The translations under genes were made by a program, and so were the position numbers. From sequence record PQ309151.1: DNA of 64,000 nucleotides. One strand, written 5' to 3'. The notes beneath the pieces are model-generated. The model was given only the letters and a program-made list of their open reading frames with translations, was not told where the DNA came from and did not search any database. Below are positions 14,601-37,069 of this stretch, piece by piece. How positions within the stretch are numbered: the stretch's first letter is position 1; each line of letters starts with the position of its first letter.

Positions 14601-16844
14601 TTACGGACCAGTCGGCGGAGCGTCGTTGTCGAGGAATGCCGTAGCATTCGTGACTTCGACGCCGAGGACGGCCTGTTGCGACAGGGCTTCCTGGAGGTTC
14701 GTCACGGTCAGCACGCCGAGGATCGGGCACAGGGGGATGTGACGGAACGACGGGTGAACGATCAGTTCACGCGAGTGGCTGGTACGCGACAGGTTCAGCG
14801 CAGCGACGACTTCCGGCTTGTTCAGCATCATGCCGTGGTCGAGCGGATGCGGCACGCCCGGGTTTTGGCTCGGGTAGCCCAGCGCGATGAAGATCTTGCC
14901 ACGCACGCGGCTGTCCGGCGTCCATGCCTTCTCGTACGAGAAGTCGGGACCCATCGTACGCGTATCGCCTTCGACCATCAGGTACTGCGTGAGCACCATG
15001 TCCGTACCGAGCTTGACGACCGGCAGCTGAGCTTCCGTGCCTTCGAGCAGGTTGGCGGCCGCTTGCCAGTTCGACAGCTGCCACAGCTTGTAGGCCATGA
15101 TCTTGCAGGTGTCGGTCAGGATTGCGGTGATGTCCGAGTAGCGCTCGTGTTGAGCGGTCGTCGTAACAGCAGCCAGCAGGTCGATCGAGACTTCTTGCAG
15201 AACCGGCTCGATCAGGTACGACGAGATGCCCATGATCTCCGGCTGACGGCCGATGATGTCCGAGCGCTTCGCGTATTGACGCAGCGAGTCGACTTCCGAC
15301 AGCAGTTGCGTCACAGCCAGGTTCGACTGACGGACCTTGCACAGGTACGACAGAGCGGCTGCGTGCAGTGCGTCTTGCGCATCGCCGTTCGTGATCGGAC
15401 GTTGCACCGACAGCGGGCTGCCGAGCGAGACGCCGTAGATCTGGCGATACGTGTTGAAGTCAGCCAGCTGGCCGAGTTCACGCAAGTTGCTGTTCACGCG
15501 ACGAACGTCGATGTCCACGCCGATGATCTTGCCGCCTTGCAGCAGGTTGACCATTGCAGCTTGACCAGCGTCGGTCACGTCGAGCGACACGCCGTTGATG
15601 TTCTTGATCGTGTTGACGACGATCGAACCCGTGATGATTTCGTAGGACGAATCTTGCAGGTTGATGTCACCGCGGACCGAGAACGACAGCCATGCCGTGT
15701 TTGCCGAAGCACCTTCGAAAGCGCCGAGCAGCGTCGAAGCAGCGTTGTTGAACAGCTTCGTGTTCGGACCCACCACGGCCGAGTCGGTCGTGAATTGCAG
15801 GTCCATACGGCGCGTCTGGCCTTGCAGCGCTTCCGTGAACTGGTTCAGCGGGCTGTTCGACGTATCGAAACGGACCACTTCCTTGACCGAGCCGTCGGCG
15901 TTCGAGAACACCACGTACACGCCCTTCAGGACAGCACCCGGATCCAGCGCATCGGTCTGGTCCAGCACGCCCTTCGCGAGTTGCGTGTCGGTCAGAGCCA
16001 GGCGGAACAGCGACGTGCGGTAGTTCGTCTTCAGCGGAGCCGTCTGGATCGCTTCGCCTTCTTCGGTCGTCGCAGCGTACGGAGCCACGAGTGCCGGATC
16101 GACGAATGCGTCGGCCGTCTGAGCGCGCACGACCGGGATGATCTTCAGCGTGTCGTTCTTCAGGATCGTCGCGTCGATTTCAGCGTTGACGATGTTGCGA
16201 CGGTTGTAGTCCGTCAGGCGCTTTTCGAGTTCGTAGCGCACTTGATCGTACACGGAAATCAGCGGGATTTCCATTTCGATCGCGTACTGGTCCGGCGACA
16301 GGTTCACCGTCTTGTAGAACATTTCGCCGAAGCGGTTCTGCGTGGCGGTCGCGAGCGCGAAAGCAGCCGTGAAGTTCAGCGTTTCGTCGTTCGGCTTCGT
16401 GTCGTATGCTTCCAGCGAGCGCTGGCCGAGCTTTGCCGGATCCAGACCGCTGTTGTCGGGAATGAACACTTCGAAAGCGTTCGAGCCCTTGGCGCCCTTC
16501 ATCGCGATACGGCGTTGGAGCGATTCCTTCGGTGCCATCGCCGAGGCGAGTGCGAAAGCGACTGCTTCTTGTTGCTGTGCGTTCACTTTCACGCCGAGCT
16601 TGGCGCCGTCCATCTTGAAGAAGGACTCGACGCTGGCTTGGACGTTCGTCAGCATGCCATGGGCAGCTTCTTCGATGTCGGGCGAGAAGCCTTCGTTCGA
16701 GACGAGCGCTTTGCCGATTGCCGGATCGTTGCGGAGCGAGCCTTCACGGCTCAGGTGTTCGACCATCTTGAACGCGGCACCAGCAACATTCACATGTTCC
16801 TTGTCTGCGTTCTTGGCGAACTTCGAAGTGGTCACGAAAGACAT
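14601..16844 (-). CDS. major capsid protein (phiKZ gp120-like)
   Basis: 747 aa with very strong GC3 bias. Propeptide with SNE and RSLE|AYD protease-type sites; FGEMFYKTVNLSPDQ; terminal HPSFRHIPLCPILGVLTVTNL. Adjacent to a divergent DnaB. Confidence 0.88.
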   Translation of the reverse strand: MSFVTTSKFAKNADKEHVNVAGAAFKMVEHLSREGSLRNDPAIGKALVSNEGFSPDIEEAAHGMLTNVQASVESFFKMDGAKLGVKVNAQQQEAVAFALASAMAPKESLQRRIAMKGAKGSNAFEVFIPDNSGLDPAKLGQRSLEAYDTKPNDETLNFTAAFALATATQNRFGEMFYKTVNLSPDQYAIEMEIPLISVYDQVRYELEKRLTDYNRRNIVNAEIDATILKNDTLKIIPVVRAQTADAFVDPALVAPYAATTEEGEAIQTAPLKTNYRTSLFRLALTDTQLAKGVLDQTDALDPGAVLKGVYVVFSNADGSVKEVVRFDTSNSPLNQFTEALQGQTRRMDLQFTTDSAVVGPNTKLFNNAASTLLGAFEGASANTAWLSFSVRGDINLQDSSYEIITGSIVVNTIKNINGVSLDVTDAGQAAMVNLLQGGKIIGVDIDVRRVNSNLRELGQLADFNTYRQIYGVSLGSPLSVQRPITNGDAQDALHAAALSYLCKVRQSNLAVTQLLSEVDSLRQYAKRSDIIGRQPEIMGISSYLIEPVLQEVSIDLLAAVTTTAQHERYSDITAILTDTCKIMAYKLWQLSNWQAAANLLEGTEAQLPVVKLGTDMVLTQYLMVEGDTRTMGPDFSYEKAWTPDSRVRGKIFIALGYPSQNPGVPHPLDHGMMLNKPEVVAALNLSRTSHSRELIVHPSFRHIPLCPILGVLTVTNLQEALSQQAVLGVEVTNATAFLDNDAPPTGP

Positions 16845-16952: not shown

Positions 16953-17594
16953 TTAGTTCAAGCCGTCCAGTTCGGAGAAATACCACTCGAACCAGTTCGT
17001 CTTATGCACTACGTTCAGGTCGTAGTACTGCTGCAACTTCTCGACCACAGACCGCAGGATCGAAAGGCGCAGTTCTTCTTTGCGGTTGAAAATCACCGGC
17101 GACAGAATTCCCTGATTGAGGGCCACTACAATCAGTTTGCTCGATGCCGAATAAACGCTATAAGATTGATGAAGATCAACCTTGTTAGCCGCGTCTTGCT
17201 TGAGGTGATCCAGAACATACTGGTTCACCAGCTTGCCGCTGTATTCTTTTTTGTCTGCGAGTTCCGAGATCTGGTTCTTCGCATACTTATCAGCTTCAGT
17301 TCCATTGACGGACTGCCCGGCTTCTTCCGGGAAGAACCACAGGTAACCGAGACTCTTCGTGTACTTCTGACGGCGATCCGACACATGAGGGATCTGACCA
17401 TTCGTCCAGAAGATGGAGAGGCCATCGCCCGAGAAGGCGTCCAGTGCCACCAGCTGCTCCTGAGTGAACCATTGGCGCATCAGGGAGAAGTTGAGGACAT
17501 CCTCGATCTTGCCTTTCTTGGCAAGCTGCCGGTAAGCCCAGTCCGGAATCACCACGACCTGGTCACCAGGATTCACGTTCATGAACAAGCTCAT
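16953..17594 (-). CDS. putative head-associated protein (phiKZ gp119-like position)
   Basis: Between helicase and MCP. Probable start MSLFMN at 17594 (AAGG SD) rather than 17660. Confidence 0.6.
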   Translation of the reverse strand: MSLFMNVNPGDQVVVIPDWAYRQLAKKGKIEDVLNFSLMRQWFTQEQLVALDAFSGDGLSIFWTNGQIPHVSDRRQKYTKSLGYLWFFPEEAGQSVNGTEADKYAKNQISELADKKEYSGKLVNQYVLDHLKQDAANKVDLHQSYSVYSASSKLIVVALNQGILSPVIFNRKEELRLSILRSVVEKLQQYYDLNVVHKTNWFEWYFSELDGLN

Positions 17595-17693: not shown

Positions 17694-19217
17694 ATGACCC
17701 CAAGATTACTTCTTCTTAAGATCATCACGCTCTTGCATCTCGAATCCCAGATTGAGGGAGAGAATGCACGATCGTCGGATCTGGCTACCAGCCTGCTCGC
17801 CACAGTCAAAATCCCCGAGGCCGATGTGGGCCTCATAGACAGTGAACGAGAGATTATTGGCTCGCTCTACAACATATGTCGCAAACTCGCCAACGCAACG
17901 CCTGGCGATGAGATGGACAAATCGGACCTGCTTCAAGAGGTTCGACTGCATTGTGGTACAGAGACCGATCTGTTCGAATCCTTCAAAGAAGGAGTCGCGA
18001 TTGAACTATCACAAGATGGTCTCAAAAAGCGTGTCGGCTTTATCCGTAAAGAGCTCAAGTCGTATCTTCATTATGAGGGTACGAAAAAGCGCATTATGGA
18101 CATGGCTCATAAGCTGCGCTTCAAAGAAAATACGATCGAGGACATGGATGCAGAACTCCGTGACTTCTCGACCGACATCGAATCGTCGCTGAGTAAATCC
18201 AGTAAGCAGGATGAAGCTATTCTCGGCACGATCGACTTGCAGGACAAGGAAACGGTCATCAAGGCAGCTTGCGCCGTGTCAGATGAGCAGTCGGGTGCCG
18301 GTAAGCTCAAGACGCATTTGCAAGATCTGAATGACATGATGAATGGCGGCATGCGCCGTGGTGAATTCGTCTGTACTTCTGCTTTGCCGCACAATAACAA
18401 GACCGGTTTCTCGCTGGACATCTTTGCTGGCGTTGCAGTCAACAACGATCCGTATCTGTTTGACGCCAAGAAGAAGCCGATGCTTCTGCGCATCTCGTTC
18501 GAAGATGACGTTGAAATGAACTTCAACCACCTCTACAAACACTTCTGGGAACAGGAGCACGGTGAGGTGGCGGTTATGGTCGGTAAGTCGGAAGACGAAA
18601 TCGCCCAATACGTCATGGACAAGATGTGTGCTCGTGGCTGGCACATTCGGATGTATAAGGTTGACCCTTCATTGTGGTCGATCTTCGATCTGTTTGCATT
18701 TGTGCGGGATCTGGAATCGCAGGGTTATGAAATTGCTCTGTGTATGCTGGATTACATGCGTAAGATGCCGACTACGGGCTGCGTACAGGGCATTGCAGGG
18801 GCTGACGTTCGCGATATGGCTCGTCGTTGTCGTAATTTCTTCAACGCCCGCAAAACGGCTTTCTACACGCCGCACCAGATCTCGACTCAGGCTAAGGAAA
18901 TCCAGCGTTCGGTTCCGAAAGACTTTGTCAAGATGCTGCCGGGTGGTGGTTACTACGACGGCTGTAAGTCTCTGGATGCTGAAATCGATCTGGAAATCTT
19001 CCAGCATATCGAGAAGCACAATGGGCATTCGTATCTGACTCTGCAGCGCGGCAAGCATCGTAACGCTCCGGTACTGGCAGAAGACTTGAAGTACCTCGTC
19101 TATCAATTCTACGACATCGGTGGCATTCCTCCCGACATGGGCGGTGAGCGTACCGGGTTGAAGAAGGTTGGTGGCAAGCGTGCTTCGGAAGCTGAAACCG
19201 ACTTCGACTGGCTGTAA
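17694..19217 (+). CDS. dnaB: DnaB-like replicative helicase (phiKZ gp118-like)
   Basis: LNDMMNGGMRRGE, Walker A variant ALPHNNKT, ISFED, Walker B CMLDY, TPHQIS, arginine finger QRGKHR. Confidence 0.9.
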   Translation: MTPRLLLLKIITLLHLESQIEGENARSSDLATSLLATVKIPEADVGLIDSEREIIGSLYNICRKLANATPGDEMDKSDLLQEVRLHCGTETDLFESFKEGVAIELSQDGLKKRVGFIRKELKSYLHYEGTKKRIMDMAHKLRFKENTIEDMDAELRDFSTDIESSLSKSSKQDEAILGTIDLQDKETVIKAACAVSDEQSGAGKLKTHLQDLNDMMNGGMRRGEFVCTSALPHNNKTGFSLDIFAGVAVNNDPYLFDAKKKPMLLRISFEDDVEMNFNHLYKHFWEQEHGEVAVMVGKSEDEIAQYVMDKMCARGWHIRMYKVDPSLWSIFDLFAFVRDLESQGYEIALCMLDYMRKMPTTGCVQGIAGADVRDMARRCRNFFNARKTAFYTPHQISTQAKEIQRSVPKDFVKMLPGGGYYDGCKSLDAEIDLEIFQHIEKHNGHSYLTLQRGKHRNAPVLAEDLKYLVYQFYDIGGIPPDMGGERTGLKKVGGKRASEAETDFDWL

Positions 19218-19236: not shown

Positions 19237-19260
19237 CCCTACTCCCGCAAGGGAGTAGGG
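19237..19260. terminator. bidirectional terminator
   Basis: CCCTACTCCC-gcaa-GGGAGTAGGG between convergent dnaB and 19271..19588, with an A8 run on the left. Confidence 0.8.
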
Positions 19261-19270
19261 TGCTCTGGCC

Positions 19271-19588
19271 TTATGCTATCGGGTTCACCAGCTTCGGCAT
19301 ATTGTTAACCACCAGCTTGGCGAAGTCATCGGTCAGTCGATACGTTCCATCGCCACGATAATTGGCGATTCCGTTCTCGACTAACCATTTGAGGGTCTCA
19401 TCGACAGGATCCGTAGAAAAGCCCCTTTCCAGGAACTTGTCTTTGATGCCTCGTTGATTCAGATACGTATCGAACATGATGTACCGAATGCAGCGAAGCT
19501 TGGCTTCTTCCGGCTTGGGCCGATGCCCGTACCTGGCACAAAGCTTTGCCAGTTCGATGATTTCTGGATCCTCTTTATTCAGAGACAT
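19271..19588 (-). CDS. putative winged-helix protein (array member 6)
   Basis: VDETLKWLVENGIANYRGDGTYRLTDDFAKL, a recognition helix plus wing pattern. Confidence 0.6.
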   Translation of the reverse strand: MSLNKEDPEIIELAKLCARYGHRPKPEEAKLRCIRYIMFDTYLNQRGIKDKFLERGFSTDPVDETLKWLVENGIANYRGDGTYRLTDDFAKLVVNNMPKLVNPIA

Positions 19589-19979
19589 CTTTCACCTCAG
19601 CCGAAGCCGACGTAGCCGGTTGCACCGGAGCAGCGTATTCCGCCAACAACTCCAACATGCTGTCGGTCAACACGTAACCCTTCTTCGTGGGATGGGCAAC
19701 GCCGTCGACATGCAGATCCACCAGCAGGTTGCTGATGTTCAGCTGCGGCATGAAGACATTGTTTTCACGCATTGCTTTCAGCAGCAGGTTTTCGTTGATG
19801 GGTTTGTTCTCACCCTTGTAAAGAGTGCGAACGATGAAACCCGATGCTGTGATGTTAGCATGCGTTGCCGGATTGCCTTTCTCAACACCCGACATCACAG
19901 ACTCTTCACTGCGAAAGCACGCCGCTGCCATGGACTGGATCCGTCGGAAGCCCTTGCTGTTTCGATCGATTTTTAGCAT
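19575..19979 (-). CDS. putative winged-helix protein (array member 5)
   Basis: ISNLLVDLHVDGVAHPTKKGYVLTDSMLELL. Confidence 0.6.
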   Translation of the reverse strand: MLKIDRNSKGFRRIQSMAAACFRSEESVMSGVEKGNPATHANITASGFIVRTLYKGENKPINENLLLKAMRENNVFMPQLNISNLLVDLHVDGVAHPTKKGYVLTDSMLELLAEYAAPVQPATSASAEVKDVSE

Positions 19980-20307
19980 TTTTAATTGCTACCTCAAAAA
20001 TAAGTTCTTTCATATCCTGCGTGAGGACGAACATGTTGCCAGGATGTTTCACCACCACACCATGTTCACTCAAAAACCGAAATACCTTTTTCACGTTGTA
20101 ATCGGTCGCACAAGAAACTTTGTTATGTCTCAGGTCAATTGCCACCTGAATGCAGTTATGGGGCTGGTCAGGAAAAACTACCAGTCGTTTTAAAACCAGG
20201 ACGTCCAAGTCGCCCCGAAAGCCGTCCACCATTGTTGCCTGTTGAGCCAATTCACGCATCTTCACGCATGCTTTGTTAAGCTTTGGTTTTTCTTTCAGGG
20301 TCGACAT
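19906..20307 (-). CDS. putative winged-helix protein (array member 4)
   Basis: Start MSTLKEK at 20307 with GGAGAGG SD. VKKVFRFLSEHGVVVKHPGNMFVLTQDMKELI. Confidence 0.6.
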   Translation of the reverse strand: MSTLKEKPKLNKACVKMRELAQQATMVDGFRGDLDVLVLKRLVVFPDQPHNCIQVAIDLRHNKVSCATDYNVKKVFRFLSEHGVVVKHPGNMFVLTQDMKELIFEVAIKNAKNRSKQQGLPTDPVHGSGVLSQ

Positions 20308-20315
20308 GACCTCTC

Positions 20316-20645
20316 CTAATGTACAGTCTGCGTCAGCAAATGAATGCTGTCGATCAACGTGGACATTTCCGGGTGAAGACGATACGACACATTCGGAAAT
20401 GCCGTCTTGGTTGCCAGGATGCCTTTTTGCATCAGATCGACACATGCGTCACGCAGCATGTCGGTCGTGTGGATGCTGTCGCAACCGTAGATACCGAACG
20501 CCATGTCTTGCAGCGTTTTGACTTCGGTACCTTTGTCTTTCAGGTAAAACACCACGCGATGCTGGGTATCCCAGTCATCTTGAGGTTTTGCGGCGATGAT
20601 GACGGCTTCTGCCAGTTGGCGACGCCACATTTTTTGTGCGTTCAT
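20316..20645 (-). CDS. putative winged-helix protein (array member 3)
   Basis: LRDACVDLMQKGILATKTAFPNVSYRLHPEMSTLI. Confidence 0.6.
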   Translation of the reverse strand: MNAQKMWRRQLAEAVIIAAKPQDDWDTQHRVVFYLKDKGTEVKTLQDMAFGIYGCDSIHTTDMLRDACVDLMQKGILATKTAFPNVSYRLHPEMSTLIDSIHLLTQTVH

Positions 20646-20648
20646 TCA

Positions 20649-21194
20649 TTATTCTCCGAAAGGATGTTTTTCGACGAGATTGGTCATGAGAGCAGCTGCT
20701 TCTTCACGAGTCAGTCTGCTCGACCCAACCCAAATATATTCCAGGCCAGGTTGGGTTTTTAGTAACCAATTAACGTTCTTGTAAAAGAAATGCAAGTCTT
20801 GCAGGGTAACGTCATTCCCTTTAACCTTGATGCTGATTTCAAAAAGTGCAGACGGTTTGTGTTTCAGTTTTTCAGCCAGAAGTTGCAAAAACTCAAAAGT
20901 CGGCTGATAGTACGTCGGGCGAGTTGTACGCATGGTGCCGCTCGGCTGCCAGGCTTTGAGAATGTCTTCTTTTTGCAAATCACTCAAAGCATTCTCGATC
21001 TCGCCCGTGCTGTAATGCGTATTCGCCTTCACGAGCGTAATGATTTCCTGCAACTCTCGTCCATGCTCGTTATTTGCAGGACGATAGACGGCGTTGCACA
21101 CCGCCTCTTCTACCGTCATTGCCTGAGTGATAACCGGCTCGACAGTCATGCGAATGAGGTTAGCGATGATCGGATTGCTTTTACTGTGTTTCAT
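20649..21194 (-). CDS. putative winged-helix protein with C-terminal extension (array member 2)
   Basis: EIENALSDLQKEDILKAW...YYQPTFEFLQLL. First gene after the promoter at 21246. Confidence 0.58.
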   Translation of the reverse strand: MKHSKSNPIIANLIRMTVEPVITQAMTVEEAVCNAVYRPANNEHGRELQEIITLVKANTHYSTGEIENALSDLQKEDILKAWQPSGTMRTTRPTYYQPTFEFLQLLAEKLKHKPSALFEISIKVKGNDVTLQDLHFFYKNVNWLLKTQPGLEYIWVGSSRLTREEAAALMTNLVEKHPFGE

Positions 21195-21245
21195 TTTGGC
21201 TCCATGAAAACGGAATTGTAAAGGTTACTACAGGTATTCACGACA

Positions 21246-21267
21246 ATTATATATTCGTGAAATAAAC
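21246..21267 (-). promoter_or_regulatory. phiKZ-type early promoter (TATATAAT)
   Basis: Minus strand GTTTATTTCACGAATATATAAT, immediately after the hairpin at 21274. Confidence 0.65.
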
Positions 21268-21273
21268 TGCATA

Positions 21274-21309
21274 ATCAATCCATCCTGGCGCAAGCCAGGA
21301 TGGATTGAT
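21274..21309 (-). terminator. terminator hairpin
   Basis: 16-bp perfect stem ATCAATCCATCCTGGC/GCCAGGATGGATTGAT, followed on minus by TATGCAGTTTATTT. Confidence 0.75.
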
Positions 21310-21313
21310 GGCG

Positions 21314-21637
21314 CTATGCTGCGATTTTAAAATTGCAAATACGGTCGATCTCCAGCCTCGTCCGCAAACGCAGACGCGACTCCTTATGCAGGCGTACGTG
21401 ATCGATGGAAAAGATACGACGTGCAACCACGTATCCTTCCGGTGTCACGAAGCGACTCTTCAGGTAACCCCGTTTTTCAAGAAGCTCCATCATCTCCATC
21501 AGTCCGTCGGAGCTCAGGCGACCCTGTGCGTCTCGGACGATATCGGACGAAGTCTTCTCAACCCCGTAAGGTGCTTTGAGAAGATCCAGGATCATCTCTT
21601 CTTGCACCGTTAATTTTTGTTGTTGGTCCAGTTCCAT
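21314..21637 (-). CDS. putative winged-helix protein (array member 1)
   Basis: LTVQEEMILDLLK...KTSSDIV...LSSDGLMEMMELLEKRGYLKSR, a MarR/PadR-like wHTH pattern. Confidence 0.65.
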   Translation of the reverse strand: MELDQQQKLTVQEEMILDLLKAPYGVEKTSSDIVRDAQGRLSSDGLMEMMELLEKRGYLKSRFVTPEGYVVARRIFSIDHVRLHKESRLRLRTRLEIDRICNFKIAA

Positions 21638-21664: not shown

Positions 21665-21841
21665 TTATGCGACCCGTGCGGTGTTGTTCATCGACTTCTG
21701 ATCACCGTGCCTGTTGCGGCTCGTGAGACCATTGGGATGAACATCCGATTTCTCGGTTTGTTTGATGTCCTGCGCTACCGCAGGGGAAATGGGAGACTCA
21801 GCTTTGAAGCTGCCCCATTTGGTTGTGCCGTTTCCTGACAT
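21665..21841 (-). CDS. 58-aa small protein (not in ORF track)
   Basis: Hand-translated MSGNGTTKWGSFKAESPISPAVAQDIKQTEKSDVHPNGLTSRNRHGDQKSMNNTARVA*. AAGGA upstream; fills the gap between genes. Confidence 0.55.
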   Translation of the reverse strand: MSGNGTTKWGSFKAESPISPAVAQDIKQTEKSDVHPNGLTSRNRHGDQKSMNNTARVA

Positions 21842-21934
21842 TTTTATTACCCGTCCTTACTGGTGAAAAACCACAGGATCAGCGAAAAAAAATATACCCG
21901 CCTCTTTCGAAGCGGGCTCTCCAGATAGAGCTAA

Positions 21935-22102
21935 TTACTTGCTCTTTTTAGCTGCCCTGCTTTTGCTGATGTGGGCTTCAATCCGCTTATCTTCTTCCAT
22001 CAGTTTGCGGGCTTGCTCCTGGGTCATGTGGTGCCGTTTCGCAATATCCTCATTGTGAGCGGCTGCTTGAAACAACTTCCTTTGACTCGGTGTATACGGC
22101 AT
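21935..22102 (-). CDS. small basic phage protein (MPxxS/T-xxQ...AAAHN type)
   Basis: MPYTPSQRKLFQAAAHNEDIAKRHHM. Start is GAGGAG-TTTTAAA-ATG at 22102. Recognised from memory as a widespread phage family of unknown function. Confidence 0.75.
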   Translation of the reverse strand: MPYTPSQRKLFQAAAHNEDIAKRHHMTQEQARKLMEEDKRIEAHISKSRAAKKSK

Positions 22103-22199: not shown

Positions 22200-23243
22200 C
22201 TACTGCTGTTCGCCATCCGGACCCGGATAGTCGATCATCGACTTGCGAATTCCATCTTCATTGACTGCAGGCGTCATCAGGTGGTCAACAAGCCCCTTCT
22301 TGAATTCCGCCACGAAGGCTTCAGGCGACTGATCGCTCGGTTTGAACTTGAAGAACGACGCGTCGACGTAAAGGTCGACAATGCGGGTGATGTTTTCACG
22401 ACGTTGCGCCAAAGCACGCGATTCGGAAGTATTGCCGTTTTCGTCGATCAGGGCGAAGTAATGTTTGTCGCCACGATGCTTGATTTCAGCCGCCTTGAAC
22501 TCGAACTCCTTGGGCATCCTGGAAGGAACCAGATTGCGTTCCACGATCCTGACCGTGCCGCCGACCAGCAGTTCTTGCAATTCGACTTCCCACGGACGAT
22601 CCTGACGGTTCGATTCGTACTCTTGTTCATTCCAGGTGACATGGATGCCCAGAGCCTTCATCTTCTCTGCGATGATGCCGCACAGAGCTGACTTACCCAC
22701 GCCTGTACGACCTTCGACGACTACACGGATATCGCCGCCGTTCAGGTAATCGCGCGACATGCCCAGATGGCCCATCACTGCAACGGTCCAGGCAACAGCA
22801 CCGTCCCAGATAACACGAGCATTCGCCGTATCGTAGTGGCCGTACTTGCCAGCCTTGTGCTTGTCTGGATGCTTGAAGTCGTAACGCTGTACGTCTTTGA
22901 TGAAATTCTGACGCAAAGCGAATGCTTCGAACGCCTGGGAATCGTCGACAATGATGTCCGGACCCATGTGAACCAGACCGACCTGCCAACCATACGGCTC
23001 GACCTTGACGCCGAGTTCCTTGCTGATGATCTTCGCTTCACGAACCGCCGCAGCTTCGGTTTCGTAATCGCGGTTATGAACCGCCATGCCGTTTTCATGG
23101 CGCGTATAGATACCGTAACCCTTGGTTTCCTGATCCGCACCTTCCATCTGGATTTCGATGGAGCCTTCGGGCGAACCATCTGCCACGTACTTCCACGGTG
23201 CGACTTGAATAGCGATAACTTTGCCCAGATCTTTGTTCGACAT
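22200..23243 (-). CDS. mosaic protein with P-loop-like segment
   Basis: IRVVVEGRTGVGKS Walker A. Start MSNKDLG at 23243; the track start 23306 lies in a terminator hairpin. Confidence 0.7.
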   Translation of the reverse strand: MSNKDLGKVIAIQVAPWKYVADGSPEGSIEIQMEGADQETKGYGIYTRHENGMAVHNRDYETEAAAVREAKIISKELGVKVEPYGWQVGLVHMGPDIIVDDSQAFEAFALRQNFIKDVQRYDFKHPDKHKAGKYGHYDTANARVIWDGAVAWTVAVMGHLGMSRDYLNGGDIRVVVEGRTGVGKSALCGIIAEKMKALGIHVTWNEQEYESNRQDRPWEVELQELLVGGTVRIVERNLVPSRMPKEFEFKAAEIKHRGDKHYFALIDENGNTSESRALAQRRENITRIVDLYVDASFFKFKPSDQSPEAFVAEFKKGLVDHLMTPAVNEDGIRKSMIDYPGPDGEQQ

Positions 23244-37047: not shown

Positions 37048-37069
37048 ATGATATATTTCTCAAATAAAC
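37048..37069 (-). promoter_or_regulatory. phiKZ-type early promoter (TATATCAT)
   Basis: Minus strand GTTTATTTGAGAAATATATCAT directly after the hairpin at 37079-37117. Confidence 0.7.

Follow-up and report, generated by a model that had tools for sequence, protein, structure and literature searches.

How many of the six small adjacent genes beside the DnaB-like helicase gene of Ralstonia phage RsoM3USA belong to one family, and what might their products do in an infected cell? The genes, g85 to g90, are minus-strand open reading frames (ORFs) at positions 19271–21637 of a 64,000-nucleotide stretch of the phage record (PQ309151.1, 225,638 bp), each carried as a "hypothetical protein" in the public record. 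This stretch, hereafter the window, is 100% identical to the record over the region, and its coordinates equal those of the record minus 62,000. RsoM3USA is a jumbo phage of the Chiangmaivirus group, in which RSL2 and RSF1 are the two named species, and Chiangmaivirus has been placed in the Chimalliviridae, the nucleus-forming jumbo phages; the region is 83–86% identical to RSL2, RSF1, the FLC phages and Burkholderia phage SURPRISE13. Jumbo phages that form a nucleus carry out their own transcription, for which almost no specific factors are known, and most of their early genes lack annotation. A literature search returned nothing on g85–g90 or on RsoM3USA. An earlier note, made from the letters of the window, had described the six ORFs as one expanded and fast-diverging family of winged-helix proteins, and all of the peptide strings that it quoted were recovered in the minus-strand translations. 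The analysis below assigns these hypothetical proteins to a winged-helix family, now defined, and to a PadR-like protein, both without annotation until now and belonging to one small jumbo-phage clade; it further yields a predicted class of early promoters across the whole genome, and the locus emerged as a recombination hotspot with allele-like variation. These results provide a starting point for asking about the first minutes of infection by these phages, with a reach limited by the occurrence of the family in one small clade and by the familiarity of both the fold and the phenomenon.

Paralogy and fold of the six proteins

Pairwise BLASTP among the six proteins gave no significant match, a point in favor of reading their resemblance as chance, or some of the ORFs as not being genes at all. 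That explanation receives almost no credence and is refuted for g85–g89 by the profile results that follow, by ratios of nonsynonymous to synonymous substitution (dN/dS) well under 1, by orthologs in seven phages and in metagenomes, and by confident fold models. Profiles were required for the comparison, and the alignments were built gene by gene from seven related phages and from metagenomic proteins collected by word-indexed and exhaustive profile searches. Pairwise comparison of these profiles, which the earlier note had proposed, gave probabilities of 91% for g86 and g87, 90% for g85 and g87, and 87% for g85 and g89 (87–92% over comparisons), with 62% for g85 and g86 and 35% for g86 and g88, and the alignments among the paralogs were long and kept a constant register. 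When each family was left out in turn and searched with the merged profile of the other four of g85–g89 together with g90, the omitted family was recovered with a probability of 89.9% for g85 (P 1.7e-6), 96.5% for g86 (P 7.7e-10), 93.4% for g87 (P 2.4e-7), 82.3% over 90 columns for g88 (P 1e-5) and 96.1% for g89 (P 3.3e-9). Leave-one-out searches with hidden Markov models (HMMs) ranked the omitted gene first among the 697 ORFs of the window in all six cases, with E-values of 0.0017–0.049 for g85–g89 and 1.5 for g90. At the level of profiles, g85–g89 are established as one paralogous family. The profile of the five did not recover g90, which obtained a probability of 2.2% (P 0.022) compared with 1.3% for the highest-scoring of 60 control ORFs; by sequence g90 is at best a very distant relative of the five.

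The paralogs follow one another from g89 (20649–21194; 181 amino acids, aa), the first gene, through g88 (20316–20645; 109 aa), the most diverged of the five, and g87 (19906–20307; 133 aa) to g86 and finally g85 (19271–19588; 105 aa). g86 is annotated at 19575–19895 (106 aa), and its start is probably the ATG at 19979, giving 134 aa, because the resulting 28-residue N-terminal extension is conserved in distant homologs. The extended gene would overlap the 3′ end of g87 by 74 bases, and on a metagenomic contig a g87-like gene likewise overlaps the start of its downstream neighbor, by 29 bases. g89 carries the winged-helix part at about residues 1–113 and a further C-terminal domain at about residues 114–181. 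The latter domain (about 65 aa, window 20649–20855) has no informative match among solved structures and recurs in relatives, where it is found twice in a 213 aa protein of RSF1 (L004, 6711–7352) and at the end of a 452 aa protein of the distant contig L012 (6821–8179). Upstream, g90 (21314–21637; 107 aa) encodes a distinct and conserved protein, predicted to be winged-helix and to end in a long, basic helix.

A profile search over the remainder of the window and the other 160 kb of the genome detected no further family members. Pfam, NCBIfam and PADLOC scans yielded no family for g85–g90; among the PHROGs, g86, g88, g89 and g90 each fall into an orphan family of their own with function not annotated, g87 has weak matches only and g85 has none, so that no named PHROG family was matched by any of the six proteins. 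Neither the six window proteins nor the 38 sequences of the g85–g89 family alignment match the MarR or MarR_2 models of Pfam at E up to 1; the orthologs of g90 are not in that alignment, and g90 itself was scanned and showed no match to Pfam PadR at E up to 1. Word-indexed protein searches returned close orthologs only, and the exhaustive profile search extended the set to distant orthologs of g86, g87 and g88 and to one canonical winged helix-turn-helix (winged-HTH) protein, again with no named relative. The latter, P0047, was reached by the family profile and is a canonical triple winged-HTH protein with Pfam RepL, TrmB and HTH_24, located on an unrelated conjugative-element-like contig. The contigs of the distant homologs are mostly too short for an informative gene context; the search for loci was carried out with the g86 family alone, the broad alignment having no conserved stretch, and led to L012.

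The fold was addressed with AlphaFold2 models of g86 and g90 and Foldseek searches, also proposed in the earlier note, and both models are winged-helix. The g86 model (106 aa form, 38-sequence alignment) has a mean predicted local distance difference test (pLDDT) score of 79.5, with 88–96 in the core blocks, and displays helix, strand, helix, helix, two-strand wing and C-terminal helix, which is the canonical winged-helix order. Against solved structures it matched MarR, the T4 MotA N-terminal domain, PadR, the RuvB winged helix and the centromere-binding AspA, with probabilities of 0.9–1.0 but E-values of 0.05–0.3. In a viral structure library it matched two RSL2 proteins whose accessions identify them as the orthologs of g85 (A0A0A8J9C6, public model; probability 0.97) and g88 (A0A0A8J8B2; probability 0.94, template modeling (TM) score 0.53, root-mean-square deviation 3.5, 82 columns), and the topology is assigned to g87 and g89 by profile homology to g85 and g86 only. 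The g90 model (mean pLDDT 67.5, core about 77) has the topology of g86, its wing being longer and residues 80–106 forming a helix; it matched LmrR and other small PadR proteins over the full length at E 7e-4 with probability 1.0, and also the winged helices of TFE-alpha and TFIIE, the whole set of matches lying between E 7e-4 and 6e-3 with probability 1.0. Searched against the sequences of solved structures, the family profile gave marginal matches that were nearly all winged helices (Cdc53 WH-B, RPC6, an Rrf2-like regulator, S10e and ETS). The top two, Cdc53 WH-B and RPC6/C34, extend from helix 1 to the wing at E 0.013 and 0.019, above the default cutoff of 0.001, and belong to eukaryotic multi-domain proteins; they lend support for the fold only. 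The winged-helix fold of the family is well supported by these models, membership in MarR, PadR or another curated family is not supported by the profile scans, and on the models g90 has only the fold in common with g85–g89.

Several known systems invite comparison. The g90 model has the layout of PadR subfamily 2 (about 110 aa, with one long C-terminal helix after a winged HTH), and the predicted likeness to LmrR of that subfamily (PDB 3f8b, 3f8c) lies in its 107 aa, its N-terminal winged helix and its one long C-terminal helix; in contrast, identity is about 20%, the Pfam PadR model is not matched, and g90 is encoded by a lytic jumbo phage and not beside an efflux or detoxification gene. MarR regulators (HpaR, PDB 7el2; CouR; MepR; MexR) were the best matches of the g86 model (79–98 columns, probability 0.6–0.99), in alignments that cover the winged helix and the flanking helices. 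They differ in the E-values of 0.05–0.3 with TM of about 0.45–0.5, in a length of about 140–150 aa against 105–134 aa for the phage proteins, in the missing MarR Pfam match of all 38 family members, and in the net negative helix 3 and wing segment of g86. The MotA activation domain (PDB 1bja) ranked second among the Foldseek matches of g86 (E 0.059, probability 1.0, TM 0.52/0.57), but there is no sequence similarity and no MotA-type DNA-binding C-terminal domain, and the phage studied here has its own polymerases. The closest precedent for the phenomenon is the set of HTH expansions described in jumbo phages (Iyer et al. 2021, PMC7824862), such as the Myb-type HTH and zinc-ribbon expansions of Bacillus phage G, which are likewise phage-encoded, lineage-restricted and multi-copy families of small HTH-class proteins; the present family differs in being winged-helix, outside Pfam, arranged in one tandem predicted early operon and mosaic between near-identical phages. 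Precedents exist for the fold, for HTH-class factors encoded by phages and for their expansion in single lineages, and own HTH or winged-HTH factors have been reported in 92% of jumbo phages (PMC7824862), so that the words "undescribed system", for which the earlier note took the array as a candidate, overstate the case.

Predicted promoter element and probable operon

The spacer between g90 and g89 was aligned across seven relatives, including the distant contig L012, and was found to contain a hairpin and an AT-rich block. The AT-rich block corresponds to a predicted early promoter element of the virion RNA polymerase type at 21247–21266 on the minus strand, upstream of g89, which is nearly invariant in the seven relatives. 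A 20-base pattern derived from it has five matches in the window, compared with 0.05 expected, and its 8-mer core ATATAT[A/T]A, here at 21247–21254, has 13 copies in the 225.6 kb genome, 13/13 on the minus strand and all sharing a wider flanking context. The window sites of the 8-mer are 21254, 25201, 41258, 43326 and 52844, with a variant at 37068, and eight more copies lie elsewhere in the record; a further short block, some 18 bases downstream, recurs at three of the sites. By-eye comparison with the annotation placed nine of ten checked copies in intergenic positions just upstream of a minus-strand gene, the genes downstream of the copies including those for the ligase and PhuZ. The 13 copies are, on sequence grounds, a candidate genome-wide early promoter set. 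A sigma-70 promoter scan showed no enrichment. A first promoter pattern, drawn from the window alone, was not recurrent and was discarded; the conserved element was seen only in the alignment of the relatives.

Phage-specific AT-rich motifs upstream of early operons have been described in jumbo phages, and in the phages whose transcripts were profiled the motif is the early promoter consensus, its recognition by the virion polymerase being inferred by the authors (PMC7598289). Under the definition given in that review, a conserved AT-rich motif of about 10 bases that recurs in the genome and stands upstream of an operon is present here, and no transcript data for RsoM3USA or close relatives were found in the literature search. 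The spacer hairpin, at 21277–21306 on the minus strand, is terminator-like and separates g90 from the g89–g85 unit; seven of its 14 predicted pairs show compensatory changes among six sequences, namely the window, four related phages and L012. A second terminator-like hairpin at 19237–19260 (minus strand; 10-pair stem with seven G-C pairs and a T-rich tail) lies between g85 and the convergent DnaB-like gene and is common to the ends of both. Packing within the unit is tight, with gaps of 3 and 8 bases and otherwise overlaps. Because a promoter element stands upstream, the genes are separated by short gaps or overlaps and a hairpin follows the last of them, it is a reasonable inference that g89–g85 form one early operon; the claim that the five genes lie behind one promoter thus holds at the level of a motif.

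An inverted-repeat site was also observed on the minus strand at 21217–21232, between the promoter element and the start of g89. Most of the six aligned close relatives have a perfect 6+6 inverted repeat there with a one-base spacer, and in RsoM3USA only the outer four bases per side are still palindromic; the repeat could be an operator or an element of the 5′ untranslated region.

Copy number, probable exchange and the helicase gene

Differential levels of conservation were observed across the locus. Protein identities to the relatives are 84–97% for the major head protein, g83 and DnaB (88–97% for the head protein and DnaB) and 83–91% for g90, and they fall to 58–85% for g86, 58–77% for g87, 42–81% for g88, 40–49% for g85 and 39–42% for g89. 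The dN/dS ratios of the array genes range from 0.1 to 0.43, indicating purifying selection; for g85 and g89 the synonymous divergence (dS) is saturated (>2), compared with 0.2–1.2 in the flanking genes, and dN/dS is 0.24–0.29 where dS could be estimated. Because saturated synonymous change is combined with low dN/dS, the divergence of g85 and g89 suggests old alleles exchanged between phages by recombination and not rapid adaptive change. The proposal of a fast-diverging family is therefore upheld as regards strong divergence relative to the backbone (39–85% versus 88–97%), but not as regards fast adaptive evolution.

Orthologs of the array genes were found in the seven phages and in metagenomes, and a comparison of copy number among the related phages, suggested in the earlier note, showed it to be variable: no g87 is annotated in RSL2; there are two g89-type genes in FLC4-4C; RSF1 encodes, besides three shortened ORFs, the additional g89-like protein of 213 aa; and in several phages an ORF of 61–64 aa matches, at 41% in profile comparison, the C-terminal half of the domain. 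On L012, g90-like, g86-like and g89-like genes and a member of 117 aa stand beside a convergent helicase gene, together with the 452 aa protein, which joins a g85-like domain to the g89-type C-terminal domain. In FLC1-1B and Noxifer, where the head–helicase synteny is kept, no family member was detectable next to the helicase gene. Comparison of gene content shows the five genes to be accessory and mosaic among otherwise near-identical phages, and as judged by the profile searches the family is restricted to Chiangmaivirus-like jumbo phages, consistent with a lineage-specific tandem duplication. The site between the array and the helicase gene is, by gene order, an insertion and recombination hotspot: in FLC4-5C and FLC6 it is occupied by an AAA ATPase gene and a homing-endonuclease-like gene of the I-TevI/NUMOD3 type (L002, 4773–6203; L007, 2768–4189), and in SURPRISE13 and FLC4-4C by other orphan genes, of 286–329 aa.

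The helicase gene itself occupies 17694–19217 on the plus strand and matches the Pfam model divDNAB at 1e-108, and the array converges on it, as had been noted earlier, with the hairpin in between. Since the array adjoins this divergent DnaB gene both in L012 and in each of the seven close relatives, its proteins might work with the helicase in the phage replisome, either by binding the origin or by loading the helicase. Winged helices are present in many replication initiators and loaders, and weak sub-threshold matches to the winged-helix models of the MCM5 C-terminus and ScpB point in the same direction. However, the array lies on the opposite strand with a terminator before dnaB; unrelated genes separate the two in the FLC phages and SURPRISE13; FLC1-1B and Noxifer retain the helicase and the synteny without a detectable family member; and such variation between near-identical phages is not expected of replisome parts. 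Fixed linkage or co-transcription with the helicase was accordingly not found, and a role in the replisome is considered very improbable. Of the earlier placement of the array by a replicative helicase, the adjacency stands, no link beyond adjacency was found, and the adjacency appears from the gene order to be incidental.

Candidate functions and flanking genes

The first-choice reading, to which about an even chance is given, is that g85–g89 and g90 are small dimeric nucleic-acid-binding early factors. The proteins would be made in the first minutes of infection and, like the small MarR/PadR regulators that they resemble, would act as dimers that contact nucleic acid with helix 3 and the wing. 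Under this reading g90 is a conserved regulator, whereas the paralogs diversify and each would have its own targets on the DNA of host or phage. Nucleic-acid binding is favored by the fold and by the likeness to dimeric MarR and PadR regulators; in addition, every wing contains 1–4 Lys/Arg residues, g87 has an isoelectric point (pI) of 9.5 and is the only clearly basic one of the five paralogs, g90 has a pI of 8.8 and a basic C-terminal helix, and the high frequency of own HTH-class factors among jumbo phages cited above agrees with such a role. Several observations weigh against this reading. The net charge of the third-helix and wing segments ranges from −2 to +2, and it is negative in g85, g86 and g89; the invariant polar residues of the g86 family are located at the start of helix 2 and not in helix 3; and no family member reaches the winged-HTH models of Pfam or NCBIfam. 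The E-values of the g86 structural matches are weak, the g90 model is of moderate confidence, and the early timing of g89–g85 is predicted from the motif and by analogy with other jumbo phages. Finally, allele-like mosaic turnover between phages with backbones about 90% identical is seen more typically in genes for host interaction than in regulators acting on a phage's own promoters.

Some of these observations give weight to a different explanation, tentatively held and clearly less probable than the first, namely that the five paralogs are protein-binding winged-helix modules, acting as early host-takeover or counter-defense factors that would dock on different host proteins or on each other and be swapped as hosts change. 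The net negative third-helix and wing segments of g85, g86 and g89, the neutral segment of g88 and the conserved polar positions outside the recognition helix would fit such modules, as would predicted early expression and a mosaic set of variable copy number, with saturated dS for g85 and g89, between flanking core genes that are 88–97% identical. The hotspot character of the locus, with its homing-endonuclease-like and AAA ATPase insertions in the FLC phages, is also in line with this explanation. The best solved-structure matches of the profile include the WH-B domain of the cullin Cdc53 and RPC6 of RNA polymerase III, and the second Foldseek match of g86 is the T4 MotA activation domain, a small pre-late phage module that binds protein rather than DNA. 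On the other side, basic residues are kept in the wings, the nearest structural matches are mostly DNA-binding regulators, and PADLOC gave no match, although PADLOC holds defense and not counter-defense proteins.

Matches to transcription factors raise a further alternative, in which the winged-helix proteins would be accessory or specificity factors of the multisubunit RNA polymerases of the phage, in the manner of the clamp-binding TFE, TFIIE and RPC34. The g90 model matches the winged helices of TFE-alpha and TFIIE, and RPC6 is the second-best solved-structure match of the family profile (E 0.019). The factors that confer middle and late specificity on jumbo-phage RNA polymerases are largely not known (PMC7598289), and group 1 jumbo phages may use their own transcription factors with their own polymerases (Iyer et al. 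2021, PMC7824862). The alternative is nevertheless improbable: these marginal matches involve a fold too widespread for them to be specific, other Chimalliviridae have the same polymerases but lack the family, and the five paralogs are accessory and mosaic. A bolder proposal that draws on both alternatives, speculative and rather unlikely, is that the five paralogs constitute a swappable early toolkit of winged-helix adaptors, each acting on a different host or phage machine, for instance a defense sensor or the phage RNA polymerases in the manner of TFE and RPC34. If it were true, the mosaic exchange between near-identical phages would record an arms race, and nucleus-forming phages would have, in these paralogs, early effectors of a new class.

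The flanking genes were also inspected. Immediately upstream of the helicase gene lie the gene for the major head protein (14601–16844) and a conserved gene for a 213 aa protein (16953–17594), and the synteny from head to helicase is kept in FLC1-1B and Noxifer. Beyond g90, g91 (21665–21841; 58 aa) is an orphan, and g92 (21935–22102; 55 aa, pI 10) has PHROG matches partly labeled as virion structural protein (E 5e-5 to 2e-4). A terminator-like hairpin at 21896–21917 follows g92, and the g91–g90 unit ends at the hairpin at 21277–21306. Farther on, g93 (22200–23243; 347 aa) falls into an orphan PHROG with weak matches to P-loop NTPases at about residues 174–234, and its counterpart in the FLC phages, whose annotation is complete, is longer.

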